From assembly GCA_964270895.1 (NCBI GenBank), contig OZ185439.1: DNA of 64,000 bases. One strand, given 5' to 3'. The DNA is from Podarcis filfolensis. Taxonomy: Eukaryota. The notes beneath the pieces are model-generated. The model was not told where the DNA came from, searched no databases, and saw only the letters and a program-made list of their open reading frames with translations. Both the position numbers and the translations under genes were made by a program. Below, piece by piece: positions 14,658-37,030 of this stretch (positions are counted from its first letter, which is position 1; every line of letters starts with the position of its first letter).

Positions 14658-16500
<1,843 letters not shown>

Positions 16501-16599
16501 TCCGTCTCTTTTCCCCCTCCTTGGGCTTTTTTCCCCCTTCGCTTTCCTTTTTTCCCCCTGCTTTGTTAAAAAAAAAAAAACGGCGCAAATCATGCACAA

Positions 16600-16930
16600 T
16601 ATTGTCTTTTGCGGTTTATCTTCCTGGGGAGAAACTTTCACCTCCTCAGCCGGGCGGTGAACGCGAGACTGATAGCGGCAATCATTCCTGCAGATAAATG
16701 AATTGAAAAGACGACACCGTCCCCCCCTTGATGAATGGGAGAAGGAGGAGGAGCTACGTAAAGACCGACGTCGCTGATCATTGGTGCCTGGCGGTTCCCA
16801 CTTTCGCTTGCAACTCCCTCCTTCCTCTCCAACTAAGGGTGCGCAAAACCTTCCTTCTCTCCTGATTGGCCAGCTCAGCTCATCAATCCCAGGTATTGTG
16901 AAGCGCATTGACATCGCTTTTGACAAACAG
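16600..16930 (-). promoter_or_regulatory. Putative ZIC1 promoter
   Basis: Two CCAAT boxes on the minus strand (ATTGG at 16780-16784 and 16865-16869, the latter in a CTGATTGGC NF-Y-type context); complex CpG-containing sequence directly upstream of the leader. Confidence 0.5.
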
Positions 16931-17739
16931 GCTTGTACAGGAGTAGCAACTTTTTATATACATAAACATATATAATATATAGATATAGATATATATTTCG
17001 ACTCGACAATATTCCAAAGCTCTCTTTTCTATAGCTGTTTTATGGAGATAGAGAAAGATGTAGATGTTATTCCTGTGCCTATCTTTTCCTTCTTTCTTGT
17101 GATGGTGATGTTTGGTTCCTGGAGATCGAGATCTTTGAACAACACAAGTTTTGAAGGAGTTGCCCAGGGAAGTCCTTTTGTGACTTGCTCCTTTTCCATT
17201 TGGGCTTCCTCCTTATTTTCTTTCAGATGCTCTCCAAAACGCATGTGTTGGTTACATTAGATTTTGCTTTAAAACAGCAGGCGTGATTTCTGTGGGGAAA
17301 CGGCTGTAACGTTCCATCACTTTGTTTTTTCTGAATTATTTTTTAGCACCCATCAAAAGGCAGGTGGGTGAGAGCGCTTAACTTTCTGCCTGTGTGTTTG
17401 TTTGTGTGTGTGGTGTAGTGTTGTTATTGTATCTCCCTGCACTTTGTTTCTTGTTTTTCTTTCTTCTTTTTTTACGCGACCTCTTTCATTCAGGTAAAAA
17501 AAAAAAGCCTGTATTTTTCTCCCCCAAAGTTGCTTTTGTCTCTTCTGTGCTGCATGGAGCTTTTGGATCCTGGGGTTTTATAATGTATTTGAAATCCTCG
17601 CTAGATAGGAGCAATATAAATTTTCTGACGCTCAAACCTTTTCTAGTTCACAAATCAGTCACCCTTGTCACATTTATTGAAATTCCTCAACTTGCCACAC
17701 CAGGACGGTGGAAAAAGCAGGCGGCGCCTTTGTTGCTGA

Positions 17740-17879
17740 NNNNNNNNNNNNNNNNNNNNNNNNNNNNNNNNNNNNNNNNNNNNNNNNNNNNNNNNNNNNN
17801 NNNNNNNNNNNNNNNNNNNNNNNNNNNNNNNNNNNNNNNNNNNNNNNNNNNNNNNNNNNNNNNNNNNNNNNNNNNNNNN
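17740..17879. other. N gap (140 nt)
   Basis: Run of N. Confidence 1.
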
Positions 17880-19060
17880 ATGCAACCCCTCGATTAACCT
17901 GCCTTTACCCAACTCAAGTCTATTGAAAAACTACGGATAGTTCCTCTTTGTTCCTGTTACAAAGACCCATTGACTATATATTAAAATGATTGTCGAGATG
18001 TAGAAGTATGGTTACTTAAAAAGAGACAATCTTTGTGACTCAATCAATTAAGCAAAGCAACTTGGGTATGTTATTCCCTGTGATGCCCGTGCAGTTTTGA
18101 GAAAGGGTGCGTTTTGCTGAGAACAGTGTTTTTAGTTTTGGTTTTTTTAAAAAACCATAATAATGATATTTTAACCTGGACCATCCCCAACCCCAATACA
18201 GAAAATGTGAACCTGTGTGTTAGACGGAGAAGGAGAGGGATGTTAATAAATGTTAACTAGAAATCAAAGCCCTTCGGGTTTTGAACCTTTGTCCAGCCTT
18301 TATGTGACTTCGCTATGACTTTTCCCCAACCTGATTTATCCTGTTTTCTGTTAAAGGAGTTAGGAATCAATTCCCTTGGCAGATAAAAGTGCACGAAAAA
18401 TATTTCCTATTTCATAGCTGTATATTTCAGTGAAATGTGGGAGGGGCACACAGTTTGGTTTAAGTAAAACAAAAACCACCTTTTTACTGCCATTCGGCAG
18501 TGTAATACTATATTATATCAGATTTCCGAGTAGGTTAAATGCATAAAGGAAGATATTCGGGGCAGTTCTATTAGCACGGCTTCATAGTTTCTGACCGATA
18601 GCGGAGGTAATGCTGCTTGCATGAAAGAAGGCTTGCACACACAAACGTACGTACGCACACACACAATGTTTGTGTGTGTGTGTGTACACAGACGCATACA
18701 AACACATACACACATACATACAAGCACACATCTAAGGTCCTAAAGCAACAGGTCTGAAGCATCTTCCCTTGATAAGGATTATAAAGAGTTTTCATGTGTT
18801 CGACTTGGTATATGTAATGAGATCTTGCTCTTTCGCCCTTTCGCTCTAGTATGCCTAATCCCAGAGCGACGGGCAAGAATCTCAGGAACGTTTGGTCCCA
18901 GAGAGAATAATCTACACATACTTGAAGTTAGCAAAAGGGAATAGATTCGCCTCTCCAAAATGCAGAGCAACACTTAACCCCATCTCAAGAGTCAACAACC
19001 GTGGAATGGTACAGTCCAAAGTTTGTTTGTTTGCTGTTGGGAACATGTTCAGATATAAAG

Positions 19061-19063
<3 letters not shown>

Positions 19064-19101
<38 letters not shown>
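19064..19101. repeat. (GT)19 microsatellite
   Basis: Directly visible. Confidence 0.95.
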
Positions 19102-19102
<1 letters not shown>

Positions 19103-20607
19103 TGCGCGCGCTCTGTGTGCAAGTGTTGTGGGCTGCAGAAGTTATCAAGTGGGATTTGCGGCATGCTCTCTGCAGGAAACGAAAGCTGCTCCAGTTCAAA
19201 GCCACATGCACCAACGTGACATATAAGCCATTAAAATATCATCCTGAAGGTTCATTTCTGCCTCTCCATACAATCCCCAGCTGCTCCCAGAAAGCAAGAA
19301 AAGAAGAAATGAAGGATGACCGCCTCGATGAAGTCGCCCAAGAGGTGTTTTGGTTTTGTTTGATCCAACCGTTGCCCACCCTACCCCCTCTATCCCACCC
19401 ACCCCCCAGCTTCTCCTCTCGTCTCCCTCTGTCTTTCGACTTTCTTCTTTTTTTTGGTCAGTTCTGACATGCTAGGCAGAAATGAGGGGATCTCTGCTTC
19501 AACAGGTGGAGTGGGGTAAGTGACTGAAGTGGTGATCAAGGGGTGGGAGACGCGGGGCGGGCTAGGAAATGCGGCTTCCCTTCTGCCACAGTCAGGCCAA
19601 GCGCTGGAGCAACCTTTCACCTTCAGGAGGCTTGTTATGTGCATGAATGAACCTTAGGAGCTCCCCCCCCCCCTCTCTTCGCACACACTCTGCGGATGTG
19701 GTTTGGCACCTTTTCAGGCACGTGGGCAGAGACTTTCCTCCACGGGAGACTGCTGGGAGGTAAAGCTGCACCTGGCCCCACCGCCAAAGGCGGGCAGGGC
19801 TTTCCCTTCCCCGACCCGAAGGTCCAGGCCGCCAAGTGGATCGGGGCGTTTGTGATCAAGGTGCTTCCCATGGTGCCGCTGGGACAAGCGCCCTATATCT
19901 GAACGCCCACTACAGGAGGGCAGACGGGGAAAAGATAGGGCAACGAAAGAGATGCGGTTGCCTCGGAAGAGAGGGAACAGGAGGCGGAGAACATCAGAGT
20001 GTGTATCCTAAGCAGACAATGCCCTAGGGTGCCGAGCGTTAGAGAAGTGCGGTTATCTCGGTCCACCTCTGCTCCAGCCTCCCAACCGTGGAAGATGAGT
20101 CGCTGCTTTGGGCTCGAGGTGCAGGGAGGAACCGAGAGGCGGGGATTTGGTCAGCCCAGGTCTTGCTCCCCCTTGAGAACTCGGCACCAGTTTCTCTGTT
20201 TCAGGCACTCTCTCCTGCGCAGTTAAGAAGGAGTTAACCATGTCTGTGGCTAAAGGTCTAGTAGCCAAGACTTCGTAAGTTTTTCACAATGGACCTTCCA
20301 TTCCCATCTCGATCAGGAGCTTTCCGTAATCGGGTGACACTCCCACCTCCCTTACACACAAACACCCCACTCCAGCATCGTTTAACTCCTTGTTTCTTTT
20401 TTTTATTCGTGCAAAAATGTCTACCAACCTGCATGTTTTTTAAAAAAAATAACAACCACCACAAACCCTTTCGCTGATTTATTTTGCTGCATTTTTATTT
20501 TATTCTTTAAAGAGAATATCTGTAAAATCTGGATCAGAAGGAGGAGGGCGACAGAGCTTTAGGCTATCCAAGTCTTAAAGGGAATCGAGAAGGATTTCCA
20601 CGAAAGT

Positions 20608-20736
20608 NNNNNNNNNNNNNNNNNNNNNNNNNNNNNNNNNNNNNNNNNNNNNNNNNNNNNNNNNNNNNNNNNNNNNNNNNNNNNNNNNNNNNNNNNNNNN
20701 NNNNNNNNNNNNNNNNNNNNNNNNNNNNNNNNNNNN
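20608..20736. other. N gap (129 nt)
   Basis: Run of N. Confidence 1.
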
Positions 20737-22986
20737 TCGCAGTGGCGAGACCGGTGAAGCCCGTTGCATTTCCTTGGCTACTGTTGATCATGTAGTTAAT
20801 CAGTTTGGATAAGTGTTGAAGGCTTGAGTTCTTGAAGTGGCCGGCTTTGGAAACACCCCTGGAGCTTGACCTCTGACCTGCGACCGGGAACATGTGCCGG
20901 GCCCACCGTATCCGGGACAATGACTCGAGTGTGTAGCCGCGCGCCCGCGCGCCCGCGCGCGCCCGTCTCTGTGCACTTCGGTTCGCCCTTCCGTTTCCAA
21001 CGACTAGCTCAACCTGATTTCCTAACCTTCGTCCAAGAATAGAGTTGCTCTAATGCTCTCCGCAAACAGTTTGTCTAGCTCTTGAAAGGCAAGATCTGTC
21101 CAAGCGTCTTCTGAGTTACTCTATAAGAGTAATAGACATTTAGGATTACCTTGAGCCTTGTATGCTCAGTCTCAGAGCGTTGAAAAATATATGTTATGCT
21201 TTTAAAACAATATGCGTAGGGGAGGTGGATTCATTGCAGCTTCCCTTGCCTCAACTAGGCCGTTTGAGGATGGAAATAGTTCATAAGAAGAACCCCCAAA
21301 TTCCGCATGGTATTCCAAAGAGTCAGCTGGATCTGTAAAAGATTTGCTGGAAGTTTATTAGAATGGCTGGCTGCATCGAGAGTCGGGTTACCGGCCATGA
21401 TTTGAGTGCTGCCAAATTGTTTTTAGTATGGAAATAGAGGCTGTTGACTAGCCGACCTGCAGCAGAAGTCCAGCCTTTCTGGATGTAAATACTACACACG
21501 CGCGCGCACAAACACCTACGGACACATACACAGGCTTGTTCCATCTCATCTCAGAAGTGCATCTCACACAGTAAAATAATCTCATGCACTTCTGGAATGG
21601 AATACATAAGAAAGAGTTCGGGCTGTAAACAGACGCTGTTTACGGTGCCCCCTATTTTGAAATTTCGGGTGAGGTGCGTGTCAAACTTTAAACTAGGAGA
21701 AAATAAGTATTAATAAGTAAGGTTAAGGTATATAATGCAGGGGTTTTTTCCCCATTCATGGACCTTGCACCTATTTCCGCTCCCTTTTTTCCAGCCAAAA
21801 AGAAACAGGAAATCCTATCTTTCCCCCTCTTCAGGTCAGAACACTACTTCGGTGTTAATAATAACCCCAAATTTTATATGATGTGCGGAGAAGTTGCACT
21901 CCATCTTGATCGTATTTGAGGAAATCTGGCCTCTGCCCCCCCATCTCTTTATTTTTAAAAATTAAAACATATTCCAGAATAAAAATAATAGCACCATAAT
22001 AATTTATAATGATTCAAAAGTGTCAAGTTTGGGCATCCCATATAAATCCCCTCCTTGATTCAATAACTTCATTTTAAGAGTATTTATTTATTTATTTATT
22101 TCACTCCCATTGGGAATCTTTCTAATGTAGTTTTTTTTTATAAAAACAACAACTATAAGCCATACAAAAGCCCTCTTTGAGCTCACATATGTGCATTATT
22201 TGGTTCTTATGAAATTATATAATTCCTATCTCCCTTTCAGGAATATATATCCAGAAAGAGCTCCTGCAACAATATTTAGACTTGGTCATTTACCTCCTCG
22301 GCAATTCGCACAAGGGTTATCGTCACTCCTTCCTATTATTCCTACTTTACTGTTCACATTAACCACTAGCACTAAGTCATGGGCTGAATCTATTGCTTTT
22401 TTGAAGTCTCCTCTTAAGTCTTAGTATCTGCACTGAGAGCTCCTCTCTTGGCACAGTCAGGCCATTGGTTCTCCTTTGAAAAGTAAGAGTCGGACGGTGC
22501 AAAAGTGGCAGCTTTAAAGCATCTCATCTTTGGTTGGAAGAGTCTTGCAAACAAACAAGTCGATATTAGCGCTGAAAAGTTTAATATTAGCTCTGAAAAG
22601 TCCATAAACAATGCAGCGTCGTCGGTGGTAACACCTCTCAGTGCTCAGCCAGGAGGTATGTGTCAGATCAAAGCAGAATTCTGGAAATCTCCTGTCCTAT
22701 CTCTTCCTCTAAATCAGCCCTAGGGTAGTTCTGTAATATATGCACGAAGTTTTGAAATGTTTTATTGTAAATATATTCCACCTCTTCCATCTCTCCCCCT
22801 CCCCCCTTCTTTACTTCCGCCATATTTTGGCGACATAAAGACTTGAGTTCCAAAACAATTTGAGGTTTTTATTCGGGATGGGGGTATTAAAAAAAAAAAA
22901 AGATTTCACGCCATTCTTCAATGATTTATCACTTGCATATAAACTAGACACTTTAAAAAATATTGCCACTTTTCTCTCCTGAACAG

Positions 22987-23071
22987 GAACCAAGTTAGAA
23001 AATAAGGCACAAGGTTTCCCTTGTAATGAGGAAAAGAAAACGACTTTACAGAAACCTTCTGGGACAGTCAA
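22987..23071 (+). CDS. ZIC4: Putative alternative upstream ZIC4 exon (mammalian-type N-terminus); coding from ATG 23026
   Basis: Acceptor CTTTTCTCTCCTGAACAG|G and donor TCAA|GTAAGT. It translates (I)RHKVSLVMRKRKRLYRNLLGQS, closely resembling the human ZIC4 N-terminus [23 protein letters not shown] (recalled). The phase-1 end fits the acceptor at 31012. Confidence 0.75.
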
Positions 23072-25510
23072 GTAAGTTAAAATATGACTTTCTTTTTTAA
23101 AAAAAACAACAACAGCCCAAAGACAATATATGATTCCTCCCCTCTAGTGTTTAACTTGCTTGCATGAACACAAATCAGCCACACAAGGTCCCACCAGCAA
23201 GTGCTTAATCCTGCTCTCTGCCTATTCATTTGGAGGTTCTAGAATTAATATTTGACAACTCTCTCATTGAAACAACAACCCCTGACCCTCTGTGATTGCA
23301 TTGTCACATTATTCTATGACATATTCATCTTGCATTAATTTACGGGCGATTTGATTGGAATGAGATTTGACATGTATTGGATCCTATTAAAGAAGAAAGC
23401 TTTGATCTTGGCGATGGGGTTTACATGATATGTATCATCGTTACCCGGTATACCAGCTTTCCACAATGTGGTGGCTACCCAACTTCCACCATGCGAGGAG
23501 TTAAGTAGGGCATTGATTGACATCTTATCTGACAGGAATACCTTAATCTGAGGCACTAGATTAAGTATTCCATTTGAAATAAACATTTGATTGGGTTGAT
23601 CTTCAGTAATTCAAGTTTTGAACTGGTGGAAGGAAGAGGATTTGAAGCCATCCCATCTTCACAACTGGTCATTCTACCTATTACCTGCTTTGTCATCCTT
23701 TCCTGCAGCTTAGCCCAATTAGACATTAGTTTTCAGCCATAAAAAGCAGGGCATATTAAAAGGGGGGGAAGATACAGAATTTCCCCTTTATTTTCCATCA
23801 GTATTTTCCGTCATATTTTCTGAGCCAATACCTTCCTGAATAAAAGGGAGGGTTCACGTTTAATTCTCATCATTATCTTGCGGCGATTCTTCACCAATCC
23901 TTCCACGTGGCTCTTCTTGATTTTGGTGAATTCCTTCCCTTCTCTTAAGTCTCCCGGCTGCCTAAATGCTGAATAGGAACTTCCCCCTGTATTATGCTCT
24001 TACAGCCCATCAACAACTCAGTTAATCCCCCAGATAACTTGGGTTTTAAATGGATTGTTTCCCTCGAAATCATGTGCACGACACAAGTCTTGCACCCGTA
24101 TATTTCAGCTTAAGGAAGCCTCTTATCGGGCTGGTTCCTTTTCCTATGAATTCCTACGCTGCTATTCGAAATAAGGCGACAATGTCCGTAGTGCACCCTG
24201 AAGATTTGCGTTTACAGGCGATTTTTGAAGTGGGAAGGGGTAGAGTTGCATAGAAATCCCTTATTCACTAGACTTTCCTTCTTCATAAGCAGTGAAGACC
24301 TTCTTCCGAAAGGTCACCACTTCCCTACACTGATTCAATGACCCTTCAGCGAGACAGACATAGAAAACGCGAAAAAAGTTTCTGCGAGTCTCAATCGCCC
24401 AGAGAATCTGGCTGTTTTAACTAAAAGCTAAAGGTCAGATTCTGCTAGCAGATACAGCCTAATAAACTCTGTTAAAGAGATGGGGTAAAGAAAATACTGG
24501 CAGCGTATAAGACCGGATGATTGCTCTAAAGTTTAGGAAGTTTATTTATTTATTTCTTGTTGTTGTTTTTTAAAAAAGCTTACAATCTTCCATTCTGTAT
24601 TTACTTATTTATTGGGGAAATCAGCCAGGTGTCGTATTTATGCAGAAATGCAATCTATTCCTTGAGGAAGATAGGATAATATAAACAACAAATGTGATTA
24701 TATCTGGTTTTAGTGCAAAAAAAGCACCTCTTAGGCTTTTGATCCATGGAACTGATCGAGAAGGTATTTTTTGGGGGGGAGTGTAAATCTCCTTCCCACA
24801 ACAGATTTCTGCTGAATCTCCAACCTACAGAAATAATACTGTGGTTTCTCTTATGCAGAAATCTTAACCACATCTTTTCCAGTTCGTGCCTGAGGTCACT
24901 GGAAGCAACAGAACACGCCATTGGGCGGCAATCCTGCCGACACTTAAGCAGACATAATTGTCGCCGGTGTCAGTGGGAGACAGAGGGCAGAATGGCTGCT
25001 TTGCTGCCTACTTTCTGGTATGCATTTATTTCCTAGGCTATGATAAGCAAAACCTGAAACGGAAGAAGTCAATTGTCATTTGTTCAGCTTCTCAATGGTT
25101 ATTAGTAGGTGCTGTCAGTGTGGTTCTGTGTGCGTAATAAGAGGGTTTTTCTTCAACAAACCTCATCTCTCTCCTACCCACTGTCTGGCAGGGCAAGTCT
25201 GTGACCCCTCCCCCCGAAACCACTGGGCCACGGTGTTCAAGTTGTTAGGATCCTCAAACCAGTTCACAAGACAGTTAAGCCGCAGCAATCTCATTGAAAC
25301 CCGCTTACATAGTCCCAATAGGTGGTCTTAACTGGGCTCTGTGAGTAAAGGGCATCTTGCCAATACTTTACAATTGGGCCACATTGTCCAGGGCAGTCAG
25401 TAGGGGGAGAAACTGCGATCCGCAAAACATTTTGTGTGGACAAACGTGCAAGGACTTCTAATTGTCTCTTCCACGCCTTATGCGGCTGCGGTCCTCCGGT
25501 GGGAAGCTAA

Positions 25511-25558
25511 TAGCAGCAGTAGTAGTAGTAGTAGTAGTAGTATTAGCAGCAGCAGCAG
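25511..25558. repeat. Compound (AGC)/(AGT)n triplet repeat
   Basis: Directly visible. Confidence 0.9.
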
Positions 25559-25886
25559 TCCAATGGAGCTAGTAACCAAACAGTCTTATTGCCTTTGGGG
25601 AGTTTAGATTCTGCTTTTGGCTAGTGGCCGTGCTAACGCAACAGGGCTGGGCGTTATTCTTGCAAAGTGCAGCTCTCCTTGTCATCAAGTTCCTCAGCTC
25701 CAGTATTTATATTAGAAGTAGAATGCGTCCATGAGGGCCATGACAGTTTTAAAATATAAGGCGGGGAGTCCCTGCCATCCCGATTTGTTTATTTGCGGAA
25801 GGGTGAGCTATTCTGCTCTTCTGGTCGTTTTATCTACTCAATATATAGAACATGTTTTGCTGGCAAAATGAACTACTAAATGAACC

Positions 25887-25920
25887 GTGCGCGCGCGCGC
25901 GCGAGCGCACACACACACAC
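25887..25920. repeat. (GC)n-(CA)n alternating purine-pyrimidine tract (Z-DNA prone); similar tract at 26101-26150
   Basis: GTGCGCGCGCGCGCGCGAGCGCACACACACACAC. Confidence 0.85.
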
Positions 25921-28900
25921 TGAGGGAACCACAAAGAAAAGTGCACATTAGGCAGGTAAGAGCTGCATCGCAGATGCAAGTCTCCTGGATAACTGCAACT
26001 TTGTTCAGGCCCTCCTAGTTCTGTTTCCCCCGCCTTCTGGTCATGTGTACAGCTCCATCTGCATCACCACCCTCCCTCACTTGTCTGCTCTGTCTCCTTT
26101 ATGCGCGCGCGCGCACACACACACACTCTCTCTCTCACACACACACGCACAGAGATATGTCTCCCAAGGTACACAACAAATGCTAGGAGTGAGAGCACTA
26201 ACTTCACCTAATATAATGAGAGAGACACCATGGGCCATTTCTTTTCCATTGGACTCATGCAAGCAGAGGGGGGAACAAGGGGGGGAAACCCCTGTGAGGA
26301 ACCTCAGGGTTTTAAGTAAGAGCGGATAAAGCCATTAGCGTTTGACAAGAAGCCATGCCAATATTTTAGAATGGCCTAAGCCAACCGATAGTAACATATA
26401 TATATTGATAAACTGTTCCAGATGTTTTCTCCCTTGACTGAGGACTGTCAGGACTGAAGGATGTCAAGAGTGTAGAGGTGAAGTGGTTGTAAGGAGGGAT
26501 GAGGAAAACAGCTTTATTTGGAAGTCACACTCTCAGTACCTTTGTAAGTAACAGCCTTCCAGAGTCCTGCTTCCTATAACGTTTCTTTCTTTCTGTGATC
26601 TCCTTCGGAGATGGTCAGGGATGAGGAAGGGGAAAGACGAAATGTTTTTGGCTTAGGGCGAAGAAACTGGCAAGGGAAGGTCGTATTGAACTACTGGGGG
26701 GGTTTAAGTTGTCTACATAAACATGTTACGTAAGGAGAGCTAGTTAATTACAGCGTGTGTAACTTTTCAGGTCCTCGGGGCATCAATGTGTGTGCGCGCG
26801 TTACATTCGTACAATAATAAATACCGATTTAGCTGTCTTTTATTTTATCCTCAGTATTGTGATCTGTACAAAAATGGTCAAAAACAAGAATATAACTCCC
26901 GCTATGGTATAAAGTGTAATGAGATGCTTCTTAGATAATTATTTATGCTTGTCGTACATCTTGAACTCAATATTCCAAGATTTAGCAATTCAAAAATATT
27001 TTATAGGAGGCAGGCTCCTATTTTTCTGCTTTACGTAAATTTGATTGGCAATTGCTTGAGTCGGGAATTGTTGTTCCCAAGCATACAAAAACAACATTTA
27101 GCTAGTAACTTTAGAATATCTCAAGAAATTGTTTTGCTAAGGTGATCTCCGAGGTGATTTTTCTAAAATTCAGTGACTGGCAACTGTTTCCACAGTATAG
27201 TTAAACGTTGCTTTTAAAAAATAAAAACAAAAAGTTCAAATATTTTTTGGGGGGAGGGGATAGAGGTGGAAAAGCTGTAAGTGTTCAGTCCGGCTTCAGA
27301 TAGTTTATTTACTGTATGACAGGATGTAAATTTTGCGATGATGAGAGAAAGAATTATTTACTCTTGAAACTGAAGTTCTGTATCCCGAGAAATGATGTTA
27401 TTGTCCTTTAATATGTGACTTCCTTTGAGGGGGGGCCTTTTAATTCACCTAGTCTTGCATCTGAAATGAGTTAAAGCCCATCCTATGCATGTTTCCTTGG
27501 AACTTCCACTGAATTCAGTTGGGATTACTCTCAAGTGAGTGTTGTGATTGCATCTTTAATAACACTGACCTCACTAATACTCAGGGCATTACCACAAGTA
27601 ACTTAAGAGCGGCTTTCGGTTTCAGGACATCACTTGTGCAGCTATTAACACGGGACAGAAAGCGGAAAAGAATATTATTTTTAAAAGTACGTGTCGATTT
27701 TGCATTTTACTTTTGCCCAGATGCTTCAGTTTTAAAAAATAAAAAATAAATAAAGGGCTCTTTTCGCAGGATGTCATTTAAAAGTAAAAAATGCTGCTTG
27801 TTCAATGGGGGGGATACATTCTTAAAATTGCCGTGTTTCTTACTGGATTTTAAGTAAAATTGAAAGCTGCCCTTCTGCAGAAAGTGGGTATACTTAAAGT
27901 AACTTTTACGTTTAGAAGTTTAGGTCCAGAGTTCAAGGCCGAATTTTGATATCCCACTAGATGGAGGAGAACAGAATTACCTGAATTCAGTAATATCGGG
28001 TTCCAGCATTCATTGGAAGGGCTCTCAATGGCTTTTTTTGTGGGGGTAAAAATAATAAACCCTATACTTTTATTATCATCATGGATACAGTACACTTGCA
28101 ATCGGTTTATTTTCCTTTTGACAATGAGCAAATGTGAGCATCATAACGTCCGATAGATTTATCTATTAATCTACAGGTTGCTTTTTAAATTGACTTGATC
28201 TTTTAATTGCTCTTTATAAATGAATGTGGGCGATTGCGTTTGACAGTGAGAGGCAAAGAGATTCAACACGATGTTTCACACGCATCCAGGGCTGCTTTAG
28301 ATGGTCAGAGACTTATTAGTTGCATAAGCCTCCTGAAACGATTTGCAACATTTGGCTTGGGTTATATGCGCCAGTTAATTGCAGGTATTAGGTATGACTT
28401 TTTTGTATTACTTTTAAAGGGAGGGGGACATAAATATCGTGTAATCGTGGGAAATGAAAGATGTGGCAGAACTTTAGCCTTTGTTGTTGTTTTAAAGGCC
28501 TGGTTCTCTGGGCCGCCAACAAGTGTCAGAAATCTAAATACCTAGCTGCCCAGCTCCGCTTCCCAGGACGACTTCTGTATGCAAAGCCTGTCTCTTCCAC
28601 ATTGTGCCCATTTCTGTTGCGGACGGGAGTCCCGGAGATTTGTCTGTGCTATAAATAATCAGCAGGCAAATTGATGGCGCGGTTGGGCTGGAGGTTAGGA
28701 AGCGAGGGTGGAGGTAGTGTGCGTGTAGGACTGGATCCCTCGAAAGTATCTTGCCTGGTCCAGGGTTTGGGGTCCACCACCATCGCTGTATTGCTTAAAA
28801 AAAAAAAATCTAGACTTTTGCTCCTGGCCCAAAACAGGCCTGGTAACAAACCTGCGCGCTTCTCTGCTTCCTACAATGGTGGGTCGTAGGCAAAGGAATT

Positions 28901-29388
28901 TATGAGGCGGTCTCAGAAAGCCCCGCGCGTCTCCTGCCTTTCGGATTCATTCATAATCTGGGCGATTGTGAGGGCAGGGAAAGGGGTCGGAGGAGAGCTT
29001 GCTACGTCTCGGCAGACCTTCTCCGGGCAGTCTCTCTCCTCCCTACCTCCTTCCCTGCTGATTTCTGCGGCGGCTTGGCCTAGCCGTATTTCGCCCCCCC
29101 CCCCGCCGCTCCCCTGTCCCTCGAGAGCGGAAGTTTTGTGAAAGTCCCTGTGTGATGTGTGCTACCTTCCTCCCCTCCCGCCCCTTCTCCATCTTTGTTG
29201 TTGCTCTTGCAGGAAGGAAACTGGAAGGGAGTTGAGAATTGCACTTTGGTTAGTCCACAATGAGCTGCTCGGTGGCCAATCAGGCAGTCCGCCCCGAAGC
29301 AGACACCGATCTGAGCTCTCCATTAAATCGTCTGCTCGTTACGAGGCTAAGTGAGAAAGAGAGACAGGGCTGGGTGTGGAAGAAGAAC

Positions 29389-29414
29389 GTGTGTGTGTGT
29401 GTGTGTGTGTGTGT
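29389..29414. repeat. (GT)13 microsatellite upstream of the ZIC4 promoter
   Basis: Directly visible. Confidence 0.9.
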
Positions 29415-29929
29415 AAAAGTAAATGGTTGGAGGCTAGCAGGAGAACAGAAAGCAGAAGGGGCTTGAGCCACGATCCAAGCCATGCAGGAGTCAGGAGATC
29501 ACCCAGGATACCTCCAAGCGCCTGGCTCTTCTAAGCAGATGATCGGGGACAACCAAAGCGTCTTTGGAAGGGGTGGGGAGAAAGCAACAGCCACCCGCCG
29601 GCCAGCCTCGCCTCCCAGGCGCTCCCAGGAGCTGCTGCCGCCGCTTGCTCAAGGCCTTGTTCCTCCTTTGGCAACCACTGCTCATTAGCGCGTAAACGAC
29701 TCGGAGGACCCCTCGTTTCGTCTGGGGAAGACGGTTCCAGCGGCCCTTAATCAGTTAAACGCAGATAAAAACAAAATGCGGGGAGTAAATGCAAACACCG
29801 GACAAGCTCGGCGCACTGGTTAGGGCTAGAGAGGGAGGGGGCAAAGGGGGAAGAGGAGGAGGAGAAAGGGAAGGAGCTTTTGGTGGGGGGGGGGGGAATT
29901 AGCCACAAACGCCGCGCAGGCGCACTGCT

Positions 29930-30110
29930 TCCCGAGTCCTCTTCCTCCCTCCCCGCCCCTTTACCCCTTCCTAAATCTTTTCAGACTTCAGCGGGGACCT
30001 GTCAGCGCTGACTTCGGTCAGGCAGCTTCGGCCAATCAGCGCCCGCCCTGATTGTTTAGCTCTCTGGGTTGGAGCCTAGTCTGTGAAGCGCTATTCAGTA
30101 GCCTCCCAGC
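29930..30110 (+). promoter_or_regulatory. Putative proximal ZIC4 promoter
   Basis: GGCCAATCAG CCAAT box (30032-30036), CCCGCCC GC box (30042-30048) and a reverse CAAT element in CpG-rich sequence about 430 nt upstream of the ATG. Confidence 0.55.
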
Positions 30111-30462
30111 GTCCTGCTGCTGCTTCTCAAAGCGTATGGGATTCCACGTAGGCATTAAAAAAAAAAAAAGGAAGGAGGAAAAACACACACACACAAAATA
30201 ATGGAAGAGGAGGGGGAGGAAAGAAAGGGGAAGGGGGGAAGAGGGGAGCAAAAACAAAACAAAGCCAAATAGTCCAGACCAAGAGAGAGGGAGGGGAAAA
30301 ACCTTTTTTCTTTGCGGGTGGGGGGGGGGACTTTCAAAAAAGTTTTTCCACCGCTCTTTCCCTCTTCCTCTTTCTCCCTCGCTCCCCCCTCCTCGGCGTC
30401 AGGTGACTTTTTAGAATTGTAGTAGAACCAGGAGAGCTTGGAGGCTTTGGGGGAGCCCAGTA

Positions 30463-31654
30463 ATGGACTCTGCTTCACTCTCCAAACGGAACACGGCGCT
30501 GAAATTACTAGGCTTGGCAGGGGCTCCTCGTCATCGTCATCACCGCCTCCATCACCACTCCCCTCAGAGCATGACAGGCTTCGCCGGGCATCCCCACTCC
30601 ATGGTTCCCACGCACCCTGGGGAGTACGCTGCAGAAAGCCGCCTCGGGCTGAGTCCATTCCGGTCAGAACACATGGGGCACCACCACCATCCTCTCCATC
30701 ATCATCATCACCACCGCCACCACTCTCATCCTCCTCATCACTCAGCGGCCCTTAAGCTCAGCCCTGCCCCTCAGCCTCATCCCCACCATCCTGTGACAGG
30801 CCAAGCCGAGGTGGTACCCAGTCCAGCAGGAGCATTTGGCCCGGCGCAGTCAACAACAGTCCCTTACGCAGTCCCTCACCCAAGTCATGCTCTTTCATCA
30901 GGTAGGGAATTCTTCCTGCGCAGAGATCTGACAGCCCCAGTCATGCCAGGGCTCCCTTATCAACACTCTGCTGCTACAGGTTCTCACCATGGAATGTTTG
31001 TCTCAACAACAGGTAGCTACCCCGGACACCATGCTCACCACCACCATCACCACCACCTCCACCACCACCACTCAGAAGCCGGAACTCCCTCGCTTTTTAC
31101 TGGACTCCACCATGAGCAACCTCCCCATGCAGCTCCAGGTGGCCATCTAAACGGACAGATAAGGCTGGGGCTACCTGGAGAAATGTATGCCAGGTCTGAA
31201 CCTTTCACGCCAGTACCAGTCTCCAGGACAGATCCTTTTGCTGCTTCCTCCTACCACGGCTACGGTGGCATGAACCTGAACGTGAATTTAGCTCCACACC
31301 ACGGCCCTGGGGCTTTCTTCCGCTACATGAGGCAGCCCATCAAGCAGGAGCTCATCTGCAAGTGGATCGAACTGGACCAGACTCCCAAAAAATTATGCTC
31401 GAAAACTTTCAGCACCATGCACGAGCTGGTGACTCACGTCACCGTGGAGCACGTTGGAGGGCCGGAACAGTCCAACCACATTTGCTTCTGGGAAGAGTGT
31501 CCCAGGGAAGGGAAGCCTTTCAAGGCCAAATACAAACTGGTCAACCACATCCGAGTCCACACGGGGGAGAAACCTTTCCCTTGTCCTTTCCCGGGATGCG
31601 GGAAAGTCTTCGCTCGCTCGGAAAATCTCAAAATCCACAAAAGGACGCACACAG
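30463..31654 (+). CDS. ZIC4: ZIC4 coding exon 1, long form (His-rich N-terminus, ZOC-like motif, ZF-NC, zinc fingers 1-3)
   Basis: [20 protein letters not shown]... with [10 protein letters not shown] (ZOC-like), [25 protein letters not shown] and [12 protein letters not shown]; donor CACAG|GTCAGT at 31655. The head-to-head position with ZIC1 identifies it as ZIC4. Confidence 0.95.
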
Positions 31655-34600
31655 GTCAGTATGGAAAGGTCTTTCTTCATTCGTGTTTTGTTCAACTATC
31701 TGCTGCATGTGCGATCTCCCCCACCCCACCCCCGCCCGCTATAATTCTACATAGAATTAATACTAGCCAATGAAGACCGGATCAATAGTTTGTTTTGATT
31801 GTTGTCTTTCGTTTGAAGAATTGAGGCGTGTGTGGATGCATAATGCTGACGTGTATGTGTATGTGCGTATGCAAGAAGGGTCTTCCATGATTTAGATCGG
31901 GATTTCCTGGAGAGGGGAGAGTTAAAAAGCCCTATAGAGACGGAAAAGCATCCAATCTTGATGCAAGCTCGCAAATTAGGAGCGAACAATGGAAGTTGCA
32001 ACTTGTCTAGGCAGTTTTGAGTGATGCTGCTGGGATGCTGCTTCTGCCGCCTTCCTTGTGAGAAAAGCACAGCTGCAAGGTCCCCTCTTTTTGTTTTGTA
32101 TGAGGAACCCTGCAATGTTTCATCCCAAGTCTTCGTAAGAGCCTTTTCCTTCTTAAAGTGCTACGGAGATTGAAATATGGGAAGGTGTTCTTTTTGGAAC
32201 CTGGGAAGGAAAGAGGGGAGTAGTGGTGTGTGTTTGGAGTTAATTTTGTCTTCCTAGCCTGTTCCTTTTGAACGGTCATTGGCCAGAATTATGAAGGAAT
32301 ATTTTGTCAGAGATAGGAACAATTTCTACTTAACACAGAAAGGAAAGTTATTTGAAGGGGAAGACCTTGCCAACACCCTCTTTGACCTCGGAATTCACAG
32401 AAGCGTCTGTGGTGAATGAATGAAACTGGCGCTATAAAGTTTTCAGACTTCCAAATTCAGCCTGTGAAGTTGCAGAGAGTTAGTTTAGCAGCCGGTCTTC
32501 TTAGCTTTTTATTGCCTTCTCCACTCCACTCCTTCCTATCTGACTCTCTTTCTCTCTCTCTCACACACACACCAGAAGATAATAAATAAGCCCTTTTGGA
32601 AAATTAAATCCGTTCCACTGTGCAGTTTTTTTGCACACACACTCCACAGCCTTATAAACTCCCAGGAAAACGACATAATCCTATTGTAAGATATCCTTAC
32701 AACCCAACGACTCTCTCTCTCTCTTTCTGCAGTTCTAAAATGTCGTAGCCTTAACTGTAGTATGGTTAGGTTAGTCCCTTCCCCCCCTCCAAAAACTACG
32801 TTTAAAATAAAGCTGTGCATTTGATGGAGAATATTTTGTTACTTATTTTATTTAAAATATTAATAAGGCGAATGACACCAAGGCATCTTCGTGTTAGGTA
32901 GGAAAGCACTGAAGAGCACAGTTCATCCCTTAATTACAGTGTTTTTCTTAAGTAAACAAACTTTAACTGCCCTTTAGCCGCCTTCTCCTTTGAAGTCTAT
33001 GAAGCAGAAAATGGTCGGATTCTTGGTAAATTTGACCTACATCAGTGCAACCAGTTGAGTGTCTGGGAAGGGTGCGGGCTTGGAGTTCAGCATTCAAAAT
33101 GTACTACATTATGTAGTCGTTTCGCTTGAACTTCCCTGCTTAATTAATTTATTTTTGCAGTGGCGGTGGGCTAGGCTTGGGATGGAGAGAGGGAGAGGTG
33201 GAGGTGGAATCTTTAGGCCTTATTACAATGCAGCGTTTTCGATTGACCCACCCCGCCCTAAATTCTCAAACCCAAATGTTTCTGAAATGGCAATAGAACT
33301 TCCTGCAAATTATTCATGAAGACAGTTCTAGATTTAAACGAGAAAATAATTGCCTTCTCAAATATTAATGACGTTGCGTTTCCCTGAGCCTGGGCAGACA
33401 GGAATGGGTTTCTGGAGATGAGAGAGAGAGAGGGAAGGAGGGAGGGAGAGAGAACGAACTTAATTCACAATAACGTAGCACAGGTATCAAAAGAAGGAAA
33501 GCAAAAATCACTTCCTTACCATCAGTACTGGCCAAGGGACAATTGTGACCAAGTTGGTGTTTAGGCCGCAGTAAGAGAGGTATGTTTTAACTTGTAATTT
33601 ATAGTGCTGGCGCTGGCAAGCTCAATATCCCTCCTCCCCTCCCCCTCGAGAATTTTGCAAATACTTTAATCCAGTCCCAGAGTTGGGAGGATTATGCTAA
33701 AATCTCCAAGCTGTACGTATTGCTCTCCACAGCGAGTCCTGTGAGAGCTACAAGTGTGGGTAGAAAATGGCGGTGTCGACTCGCTGCAGTGTGTGCGCGC
33801 GCGCGCCCTTGCCCCCATCCGTCCTCAGTCCTCGCTTCCTCTCTTCCTCTCCCCCCCCCCCCATCTCTCCACCCCCAAACACACACTTTCAAAAGTGCGG
33901 CGGGTCAGAGACAAACATGCAAACACGTTTCCTTTTGACCGATACATATTTACGCGCAGGGAATCCTATCCTTTTAACGCGGAACTCTAACATTAACCCT
34001 AGGCCTGAAACCACATTCACAGATAATGCGCTGCAGCCAACAAGAAAGAGCCCCCTTCTGCAATCATTTCTTGTGGCCGGGGCCTTTATTTACCCCTGCC
34101 AAGGTGCTGAGGTGTGGAAGGTGGGGGCGTACAAGAAGCTGGCCATTTTTATTTATTTTTCTGTTGCTGCTCGCGAGAAACAAGACCGGTCTTATACCAC
34201 GATGTAACTCACGCCGCCCGATCGCTGGGTTTATGACGGGGCCTCTCCCCAGGGCCTCCTAACTTACTGCTTGCCTGTGCTACACCAATCCTCGTGATTT
34301 GTTATTTCAGCTGAGTAGCGGAAGGTCAAACTGTTTCTTTACAAGGAACTATAATTAAAATACTTAAAGAGCCGTCAAAATATACAGATGACCTTCCTTT
34401 TCTTTTCTCTCCCCGCCAAAACAAAGCAAAATGAGTAAATACCTTTCGATGCAGGTACACACGGAGCCTCACTTGTCATGCCTAGCCTGCTAAAAACGTC
34501 GTTTTCTCGCAGGCCTGAGACCAATATTGGTATTTGCCACCGATATTCTTTAAAATGTGGAACCATATTTTACTCCTTGCAATAACTAGCCGTCCAGCAC

Positions 34601-36299: not shown

Positions 36300-37030
36300 G
36301 CTCAATAACCTGTGACCTGCAGACACGCCACCCCGCCACCCCAATAAAACACGCAACACCCGCACCTTTCCCCACCCTGGTCCTTTACGCAAAGTCTCCC
36401 TGGATTCCCTCTTTTCCTTGCAGGCGAGAAGCCCTTCAAATGCGAGTTCGAGGGCTGCGAGCGCCGCTTCGCCAACAGCAGCGACAGGAAGAAGCATTCC
36501 CACGTGCACACGAGCGACAAGCCCTACAACTGCAAAGTGCGAGGCTGTGACAAGTCCTACACGCACCCCAGCTCCTTGCGGAAGCACATGAAAGTCCACT
36601 GCAAGTCCCCACCTCCCAGCTCGGGCTACGAGTCGTCCACCCCGTCGCTGGTGTCGCCGTCGTCGGACTGCGGCCGGGAGCCCCCTCAGCCGCCACCACC
36701 GCCGCCGCCGCCACCGCCTCCCGCAGCGGCTTCCTCCACCCAGGCGGCAGCCAACCTGAGCGAATGGTACGTGTGTCAGAGCTCAGGGGCCAGCGGCATC
36801 CCGACTCCACCCAGTAACTCTCCGTCACCTCACCCGGGAGAGGCCGCTTACACGAACTGCGAGCCCCGGCCCACTTATTAAAGTCAATACGGTAGGATGG
36901 CCCGCCGGCGGCGGCGAGACTGCATTGTTCTTTTCGGGGTGCTGTGGATCCTTGGCTCACACTGGACGAACGGCGGGTCGGCAAGGCCCGGTTCTTGGGG
37001 GAGGGGCGGAAATCGATCCCAGGCCTGGGG
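36300..37030. other. CpG-rich island over ZIC4 exon 2
   Basis: High CpG and GC3 density by eye. Confidence 0.65.
36424..36881 (+). CDS. ZIC4: ZIC4 coding exon 2 (zinc fingers 4-5 and C-terminus to stop)
   Basis: Acceptor CTTTTCCTTGCAG|GC; encodes [71 protein letters not shown]...NLSEWYVCQ...PTY-TAA. KKHSHVH and CKVRGC are typical of Zic4/5. Total CDS 1650 nt, 549 aa. Confidence 0.96.

Follow-up and report, generated by a model that had tools for sequence, protein, structure and literature searches.

A candidate alternative 5′ coding exon of ZIC4 in the lizard Podarcis filfolensis predicts a short, ZOC-less protein beside a ZOC-bearing long form

Introduction

ZIC4 and ZIC5, the ZIC subclass B, are said to lack the ZOC box (PMC7403390). 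A second study relaxed the ZOC consensus to RDFL-(1-2 aa)-RR and found the motif in Xenopus Zic4 (PMC2988786). Our literature search yielded no paper that describes a short isoform of sauropsid ZIC4, and the non-coding RNA located beside mouse Zic4 (PMC2722021) is unrelated. The ZOC-less isoform as such is already known, as it is present in the public annotation of lizards, turtles, birds and marsupials.

Around an acceptor site within the large ZIC4 exon, a protein search recovered ZIC4 models with three classes of N-terminus: long with ZOC, long with the ZOC stretch spliced out, and short. In the second class, 35–37 residues are removed, leaving the junction ..A|GSYPGHH. The short forms start with MRHKT(S/P)LVMRKRKRLYRN in turtles and birds, with MR(Y)K.. 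in marsupials and placental mammals, and with MRKRKRL(Y/H)R in squamates, and all of these N-termini join directly to S-S-Y-P-G-H-H. The short N-terminus is modelled in squamates (Hemicordylus X2, Heteronotia X1, Anolis X2), in eight turtle species (all 373 aa), in birds (crow, jay, blackbird, pigeon, chicken, emu and hoatzin) and in marsupials (Monodelphis X5/X7, Dromiciops X2); these models of relatives are automatic predictions. When the N-terminal 40 residues of the turtle short form were used in a word search, 15 candidates came up, all from turtles and birds; this search is too insensitive to delimit the taxonomic range.

Two further kinds of annotated isoform come close to the short form. 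Exitron isoforms of turtle (Mauremys X2), python (Liasis isoform 2), gar (X2), coelacanth (X2), tailed frog (Ascaphus X2) and opossum (Monodelphis X2/X4) use the same acceptor and likewise skip the ZOC. Unlike the short form, however, they begin at the proximal start, retain the long N-terminus up to about residue 146 and lose only 37 residues. Zebrafish ZIC4 X2 and Hemicordylus X3 join an upstream exon straight to G/S-SYPGH and are thus ZOC-less in the same manner as the short form, whereas their leader peptides are unrelated to the one described below and lack MRKRKR.

Here, we analyse a stretch of 64,000 nucleotides of P. filfolensis DNA (contig OZ185439.1, hereafter the window), in which an earlier note, made from the sequence, had proposed a mammalian-type first coding exon of ZIC4.

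Results

The window holds the head-to-head ZIC1/ZIC4 pair of a squamate. Exon 1 of ZIC1 lies on the minus strand at ~14.7–15.8 kb and the large exon of ZIC4 on the plus strand at 30463–31654; the closest proteins to the window's ZIC4 in a protein search are those of lizards (Lerista, 91%; Pogona, 90%). Between the two genes, on the ZIC4 strand and 7.4 kb 5′ of the long-form ATG at 30463, lies an 85-nt stretch (22987–23071) with the appearance of an exon. The order is the same in the gecko, duck and skink loci. An Rfam search of positions 16000–32000 gave no match.

We identified the exon by reading its frames, by tblastn, by blastn with flanking sequence and by exon-by-exon comparison with RefSeq models. 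It is preceded by a polypyrimidine tract and the sequence ctcctgaacag, with the acceptor AG at 22985–22986, and is followed by a gtaagt donor from 23072 (GT at 23072–23073), so that the canonical splice sites claimed for it are indeed present. Frame 1 reads EPS*KIRHKVSLVMRKRKRLYRNLLGQS with a single base (A, 23071) left over, and the exon therefore ends in phase 1. Its coding part (23026–23071, plus strand) comprises the ATG opening MRKRKRLYRNLLGQS and the first base of a serine codon. The basic cluster RKRKR contains the pattern K-(K/R)-x-(K/R), which is invariant in the amniotes compared and corresponds to the consensus of the classical monopartite nuclear localisation signal.

The predicted architecture of the short form closely matches that of RefSeq ZIC4 isoform X2 of Zootoca vivipara (XP_034989329.1, 378 aa), which we found by cluster look-up. 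Three exons of the window align with it collinearly when each is compared separately rather than as a joined protein: the 85-nt exon with residues 1–15 (100%, 15/15), the part of the large exon common to all isoforms (31013–31654) with residues 17–227 (98%), and the last coding exon (36424–36881) with residues 229–378 (99%). Residues 16 and 228, the sole gaps in this match, are the two split codons. Zootoca X2, a computed model, thus has the same three-exon coding architecture and likewise starts at the second Met, differing from the window in being 3 residues shorter (lengths of His/Pro runs) and in two substitutions (Y/F, P/S). Together with the conservation described below, this match makes it very probable that the alternative 5′ coding exon of amniote ZIC4 has its lizard orthologue in this 85-nt stretch, which would give a short form without ZOC.

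To place the exon in a wider context, we compared the ZIC4 loci of gecko, duck, rattlesnake, caecilian, toad, skink, catshark and eel. By tblastn, the exon peptide was located at the syntenic position in skink (E 6e-8), rattlesnake (3e-7) and duck (1e-6), and blastn of the exon with its flanks gave E values of 1e-123 to 1e-53. In skink and rattlesnake the syntenic exon lies 7.0–7.6 kb 5′ of the long start; it is also present in gecko and duck. The acceptor AACAG|GAACC is shared by all five amniotes (window, skink, rattlesnake, gecko and duck), and a 20-nt donor motif (GTCAA|GTAAGTTAAAATATG) is identical in four of them, rattlesnake differing at a single position. The other reptiles, as well as duck, keep both splice sites and the frame. 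A short segment flanked by AG and GT might resemble a mammalian N-terminus by accident, and the exon is indeed short, which is all that speaks for such a coincidence. The syntenic matches and the 15 of 15 residues shared with an annotated isoform refute this explanation, to which we assign a negligible probability.

Aligned with 10 orthologues, the exon peptide is 63–87% identical and homologous to M-R-(H/Y)-K-x-x-L-V-M-R-K-R-x-R-L-Y-R-N; M10, R11, K12, R13, R15, R18 and S24 are invariant. The ATG and the next five codons are unchanged in the five amniotes even at synonymous sites, whereas further on, in its second half, the peptide differs freely from one species to another. Only MRKRKR..YR looks constrained, and since this constraint reaches synonymous sites, it may not act at the level of the protein. 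Such a pattern would also be expected if the stretch were a regulatory non-coding element of ZIC1/ZIC4, unspliced in this lizard, with an inherited but unused exon-like appearance. Deeply conserved non-coding blocks around the exon would agree with this: one lies just 3′ of it in the intron (23147–23290; 82% identity to toad over 143 nt, 77% to caecilian and 83% to catshark over 48 nt), another further upstream (19125–19344). Copies of the exon are, moreover, recognisable in caecilian and toad despite an in-frame stop. However, every amniote compared keeps both splice sites and an open frame, and in Zootoca, a lizard apparently of the same family, exactly this isoform is modelled, with exon products 98–100% identical to those of the window. 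On these grounds we reject a purely regulatory role as very unlikely and retain the reading of an alternative coding exon.

Where translation of the exon would begin differs between lineages. The short forms of mammals, turtles and birds start 8 codons upstream of the window's ATG, with M-R-(Y/H)-K. In the window this Met1 position (23002–23004) is ATA, as it is in 4/4 squamates compared, whereas duck has ATG; the window additionally carries an in-frame TAG at 22996–22998 that is private to it, the other squamates and duck having CAG. In gecko, a 1-nt insertion lies between ATA and ATG, and the part 5′ of the ATG can therefore not be coding there. The earlier note had placed the start at ATG 23026 on account of the ATA and the upstream TAG; all three codons are where it put them, and the start at the second Met is supported by the ATA of all four squamates, by the gecko indel and by the RefSeq models of four squamates, which begin with MRKRKR at the equivalent of ATG 23026.

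An alternative would be that the exon is spliced in but left untranslated in this lizard, with translation starting at a later Met (e.g. ..GEMYAR..) and yielding a shorter, again ZOC-less protein. The loss of Met1, the TAG at 22996, the poor conservation of the C-terminal half of the exon peptide and a possible upstream ORF from ATG 19309 (see below) would all be compatible with this, as would the Anolis X3 and Monodelphis X6 models, which start at MYAR. Against it stand the sequence context of ATG 23026–23028 (purine at −3, A at +4), the invariance of this ATG and its five following codons, the squamate models that start there, and a frame that is open to the donor in all amniotes examined, while both amphibians have TGA at codon 6. 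We thus regard an untranslated exon as improbable, and favour translation from ATG 23026.

The exon-like element extends beyond amniotes. The caecilian (L004 3853–3903) and toad (L005 4790–4835) copies keep the ATG, a phase-1 GTAA(A/G)T donor and the flanking conserved block, whereas codon 6, CGA in every amniote compared, is TGA in both. No matching acceptor was seen for the copy in caecilian, and no copy of the exon was found within 10 kb upstream in the eel and catshark loci. In the caecilian copy, a further ATG (MKES) follows in the same frame, 12 nt ahead of the donor.

The other half of the predicted junction is much more widely conserved. An internal 3′ splice-site motif (30997–31019) within the large ZIC4 exon contains the acceptor caacaacag, whose AG ends at 31012; position 31012 opens long-form codon 184 (ggt, 31012–31014). 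Its 23-mer is identical, synonymous positions included, in window, gecko, duck, rattlesnake, caecilian, toad and skink, while the catshark sequence departs from it at 1 position and that of eel at 2. Joining the phase-1 end of the exon to this acceptor in silico combines A (23071) with GT (31013–31014) to AGT (Ser), followed in frame by AGC TAC CCC GGA CAC CAT. Both this frame arithmetic and the collinear match with Zootoca X2 agree with the in-frame junction before SYPGHH that had been proposed. Within the intron so removed (23072–31012, 7.9 kb) lie the ATG of the long form at 30463 and the sequence that encodes the ZOC. The orthologous gecko model, P0011, is arranged alike, with the exon at L001 9961–10046 and the acceptor motif at L001 18144.

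The lengths of the predicted products can be calculated directly. The coding part of the 85-nt exon (46 nt), the common part of the large exon (642 nt, 31013–31654, encoding the His-rich region, ZF-NC and zinc fingers 1–3) and the last coding exon (458 nt, 36424–36881, encoding zinc fingers 4–5 and the long C-terminus, with the stop codon at 36879–36881 included) add up to 1146 nt, or 381 aa. Dropping the 38 residues after ..NLSE shortens this form to 343 aa. Both sizes predicted previously are thereby reproduced.

The sequence specific to the long form spans 183 codons (30463–31012, plus strand). It includes the ZOC core REFFLRR (30904–30924), which lies N-terminal to ZF-NC and 5′ of the acceptor at 31013, and is accordingly absent from the short form. 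With two deviations (D to E, L to F), REFFLRR fits the relaxed ZOC consensus, making it a putative ZOC motif of the long form. The motif is encoded within an in-frame exitron of 111 nt (30902–31012), whose donor CAG|GTAGGGA is conserved like the acceptor 23-mer; between lizard on the one hand and eel and catshark on the other, donor and acceptor hardly vary. Just 5′ of ATG 30463, at 30438–30465, the sequence MSV(D/E)ALGSPVM, with which turtle, bird and marsupial long forms begin, is recognisable in another frame. This is consistent with a 1-nt indel that moved the start of the long form in squamates to a Met further on (MDSA..).

As the annotated exitron isoforms and those with unrelated 5′ exons use the equivalent of the acceptor at 31013 as well, this site is, judging from the gene models, a common point of entry to ZOC-less ZIC4 in vertebrates. 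Its conservation to eel and catshark and its use by these other isoforms further indicate that the predicted amniote short form re-uses a pre-existing internal 3′ splice site that is older than the 85-nt exon.

Upstream of the exon, the block at 19125–19344 (~220 nt, plus strand) is 79–91% identical to gecko, duck, caecilian, toad and eel. Frame-breaking indels in the amphibians and eel show that it is conserved as DNA or RNA and not as protein, and it may represent a shared promoter or enhancer of ZIC1 and ZIC4. The same block doubles as an upstream exon of short-form ZIC4 transcripts in birds, and probably in lizards. Bird models extend the short form 5′ with MKDDRLD.., to which this block of the window is homologous, and pigeon X4 (P0028) begins with a peptide homologous to it, joined to the MRHK exon. 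The donor GT that follows the block, at 19345 in the window, is confined to amniotes. If this candidate 5′ exon were joined to 22987, an upstream ORF of 15 codons would open at ATG 19309 (MKDDRLDEVAQE) and end at TAG 22996, 27 nt before ATG 23026. Inclusion of the block in the transcript could hence lower translation of the short form.

Discussion

Our comparison suggests how one locus could provide two kinds of ZIC4 in this lizard. A distal promoter would drive transcripts carrying the 85-nt exon, the donor after 23071 would splice past the proximal start at 30463 and the ZOC-coding stretch, and the splice would land on the old internal 3′ splice site at 31013 within the large ZIC4 exon. Starting at ATG 23026, ribosomes would then make a protein of 381 aa (343 aa with the short C-terminus), in which 16 residues (MRKRKRLYRNLLGQS plus Ser) would stand in for the N-terminal 183 residues, ZOC motif included, while ZF-NC and all five zinc fingers would be retained. 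Possible effects include the loss of ZOC-mediated partner binding as described for ZIC2, or the gain of the basic, NLS-like RKRKR. For this species, we infer the use of the junction, the choice of promoter and any functional effect from sequence features, conservation and the isoforms of relatives.

Comparing the window with mammalian ZIC4 reveals both a common design and a different context. In placental mammals and marsupials, the first coding exon of short ZIC4 (334/335-aa type, e.g. Monodelphis X7) is homologous to that of the window, with 67–70% identity, and is joined just before S-(Y/S)-x-G-H-H; the protein lacks the ZOC and can end in the short C-terminus ..LSE. A titi-monkey model, which opens with the sequence given in the note for human ZIC4, is 70% identical to the window's exon, in support of the proposal that the exon is a homologue of the first coding exon of mammalian ZIC4. 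However, whereas the short N-terminus is the only one in placental mammals, in the window it is an alternative to the ZOC-bearing long form. The suggestion that the short, ZOC-less architecture pre-dates mammals as an alternative isoform gains weight from the RefSeq models of Zootoca, Hemicordylus, Heteronotia, Anolis, turtles and birds.

The earlier note had further held that mammals lost the long, ZOC-bearing form, and this part needs to be revised. Among the Monodelphis models, each of three N-termini (long, exitron or short) occurs with each of two C-termini (long or short), six combinations in all: X1 and X3 are long forms with the ZOC motif GRDFLIRRDL, X2/X4 exitron forms and X5/X7 short forms. 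No ZOC-like motif precedes the acceptor in any of the 35 placental models among the best matches. Seven placental read-through models (P0066, P0072, P0079, P0084, P0085, P0095 and P0100) have ..LFVSTTG just before the acceptor, which we interpret as a remnant of the lost long exon; the sequence further upstream no longer resembles the ZOC region. As opossum keeps the long ZOC form, its loss appears to be placental and not mammalian, with placental mammals alone lacking it among the matches examined.

It is possible, and we put this forward tentatively, that the MRKRKR exon was not an invention of mammals or amniotes. A tetrapod-wide exon-like element would have become coding when its frame opened: the single C/T difference at codon 6 would have opened the N-terminus in the amniote stem, or closed it in the amphibian stem, a history read from two amphibian sequences. 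The exon would plug into an older acceptor of jawed vertebrates that already served to drop the ZOC; squamates would subsequently have lost Met1, and placental mammals the long ZOC form.

For the subclass B description (PMC7403390), the consequences are twofold. The predicted short isoform of the window fits a protein that lacks the ZOC box, whereas the long form, which carries REFFLRR, does not. Given that this motif fits the relaxed consensus, the mammal-centred textbook line that ZIC4 lacks the ZOC box describes placental ZIC4 and not vertebrate ZIC4: the models of lizard, turtle, bird and marsupial encode both ZOC-bearing and ZOC-less proteins. According to these gene models, one ZIC4 locus gives both kinds of protein by means of alternative first exons, together with an internal acceptor that is shared, which makes sauropsids and marsupials natural systems in which to ask what the ZOC does in ZIC4. 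To this picture the window adds details: squamates have lost Met1, an upstream stop is specific to one lineage, and the history of the exon's sequence can be traced.
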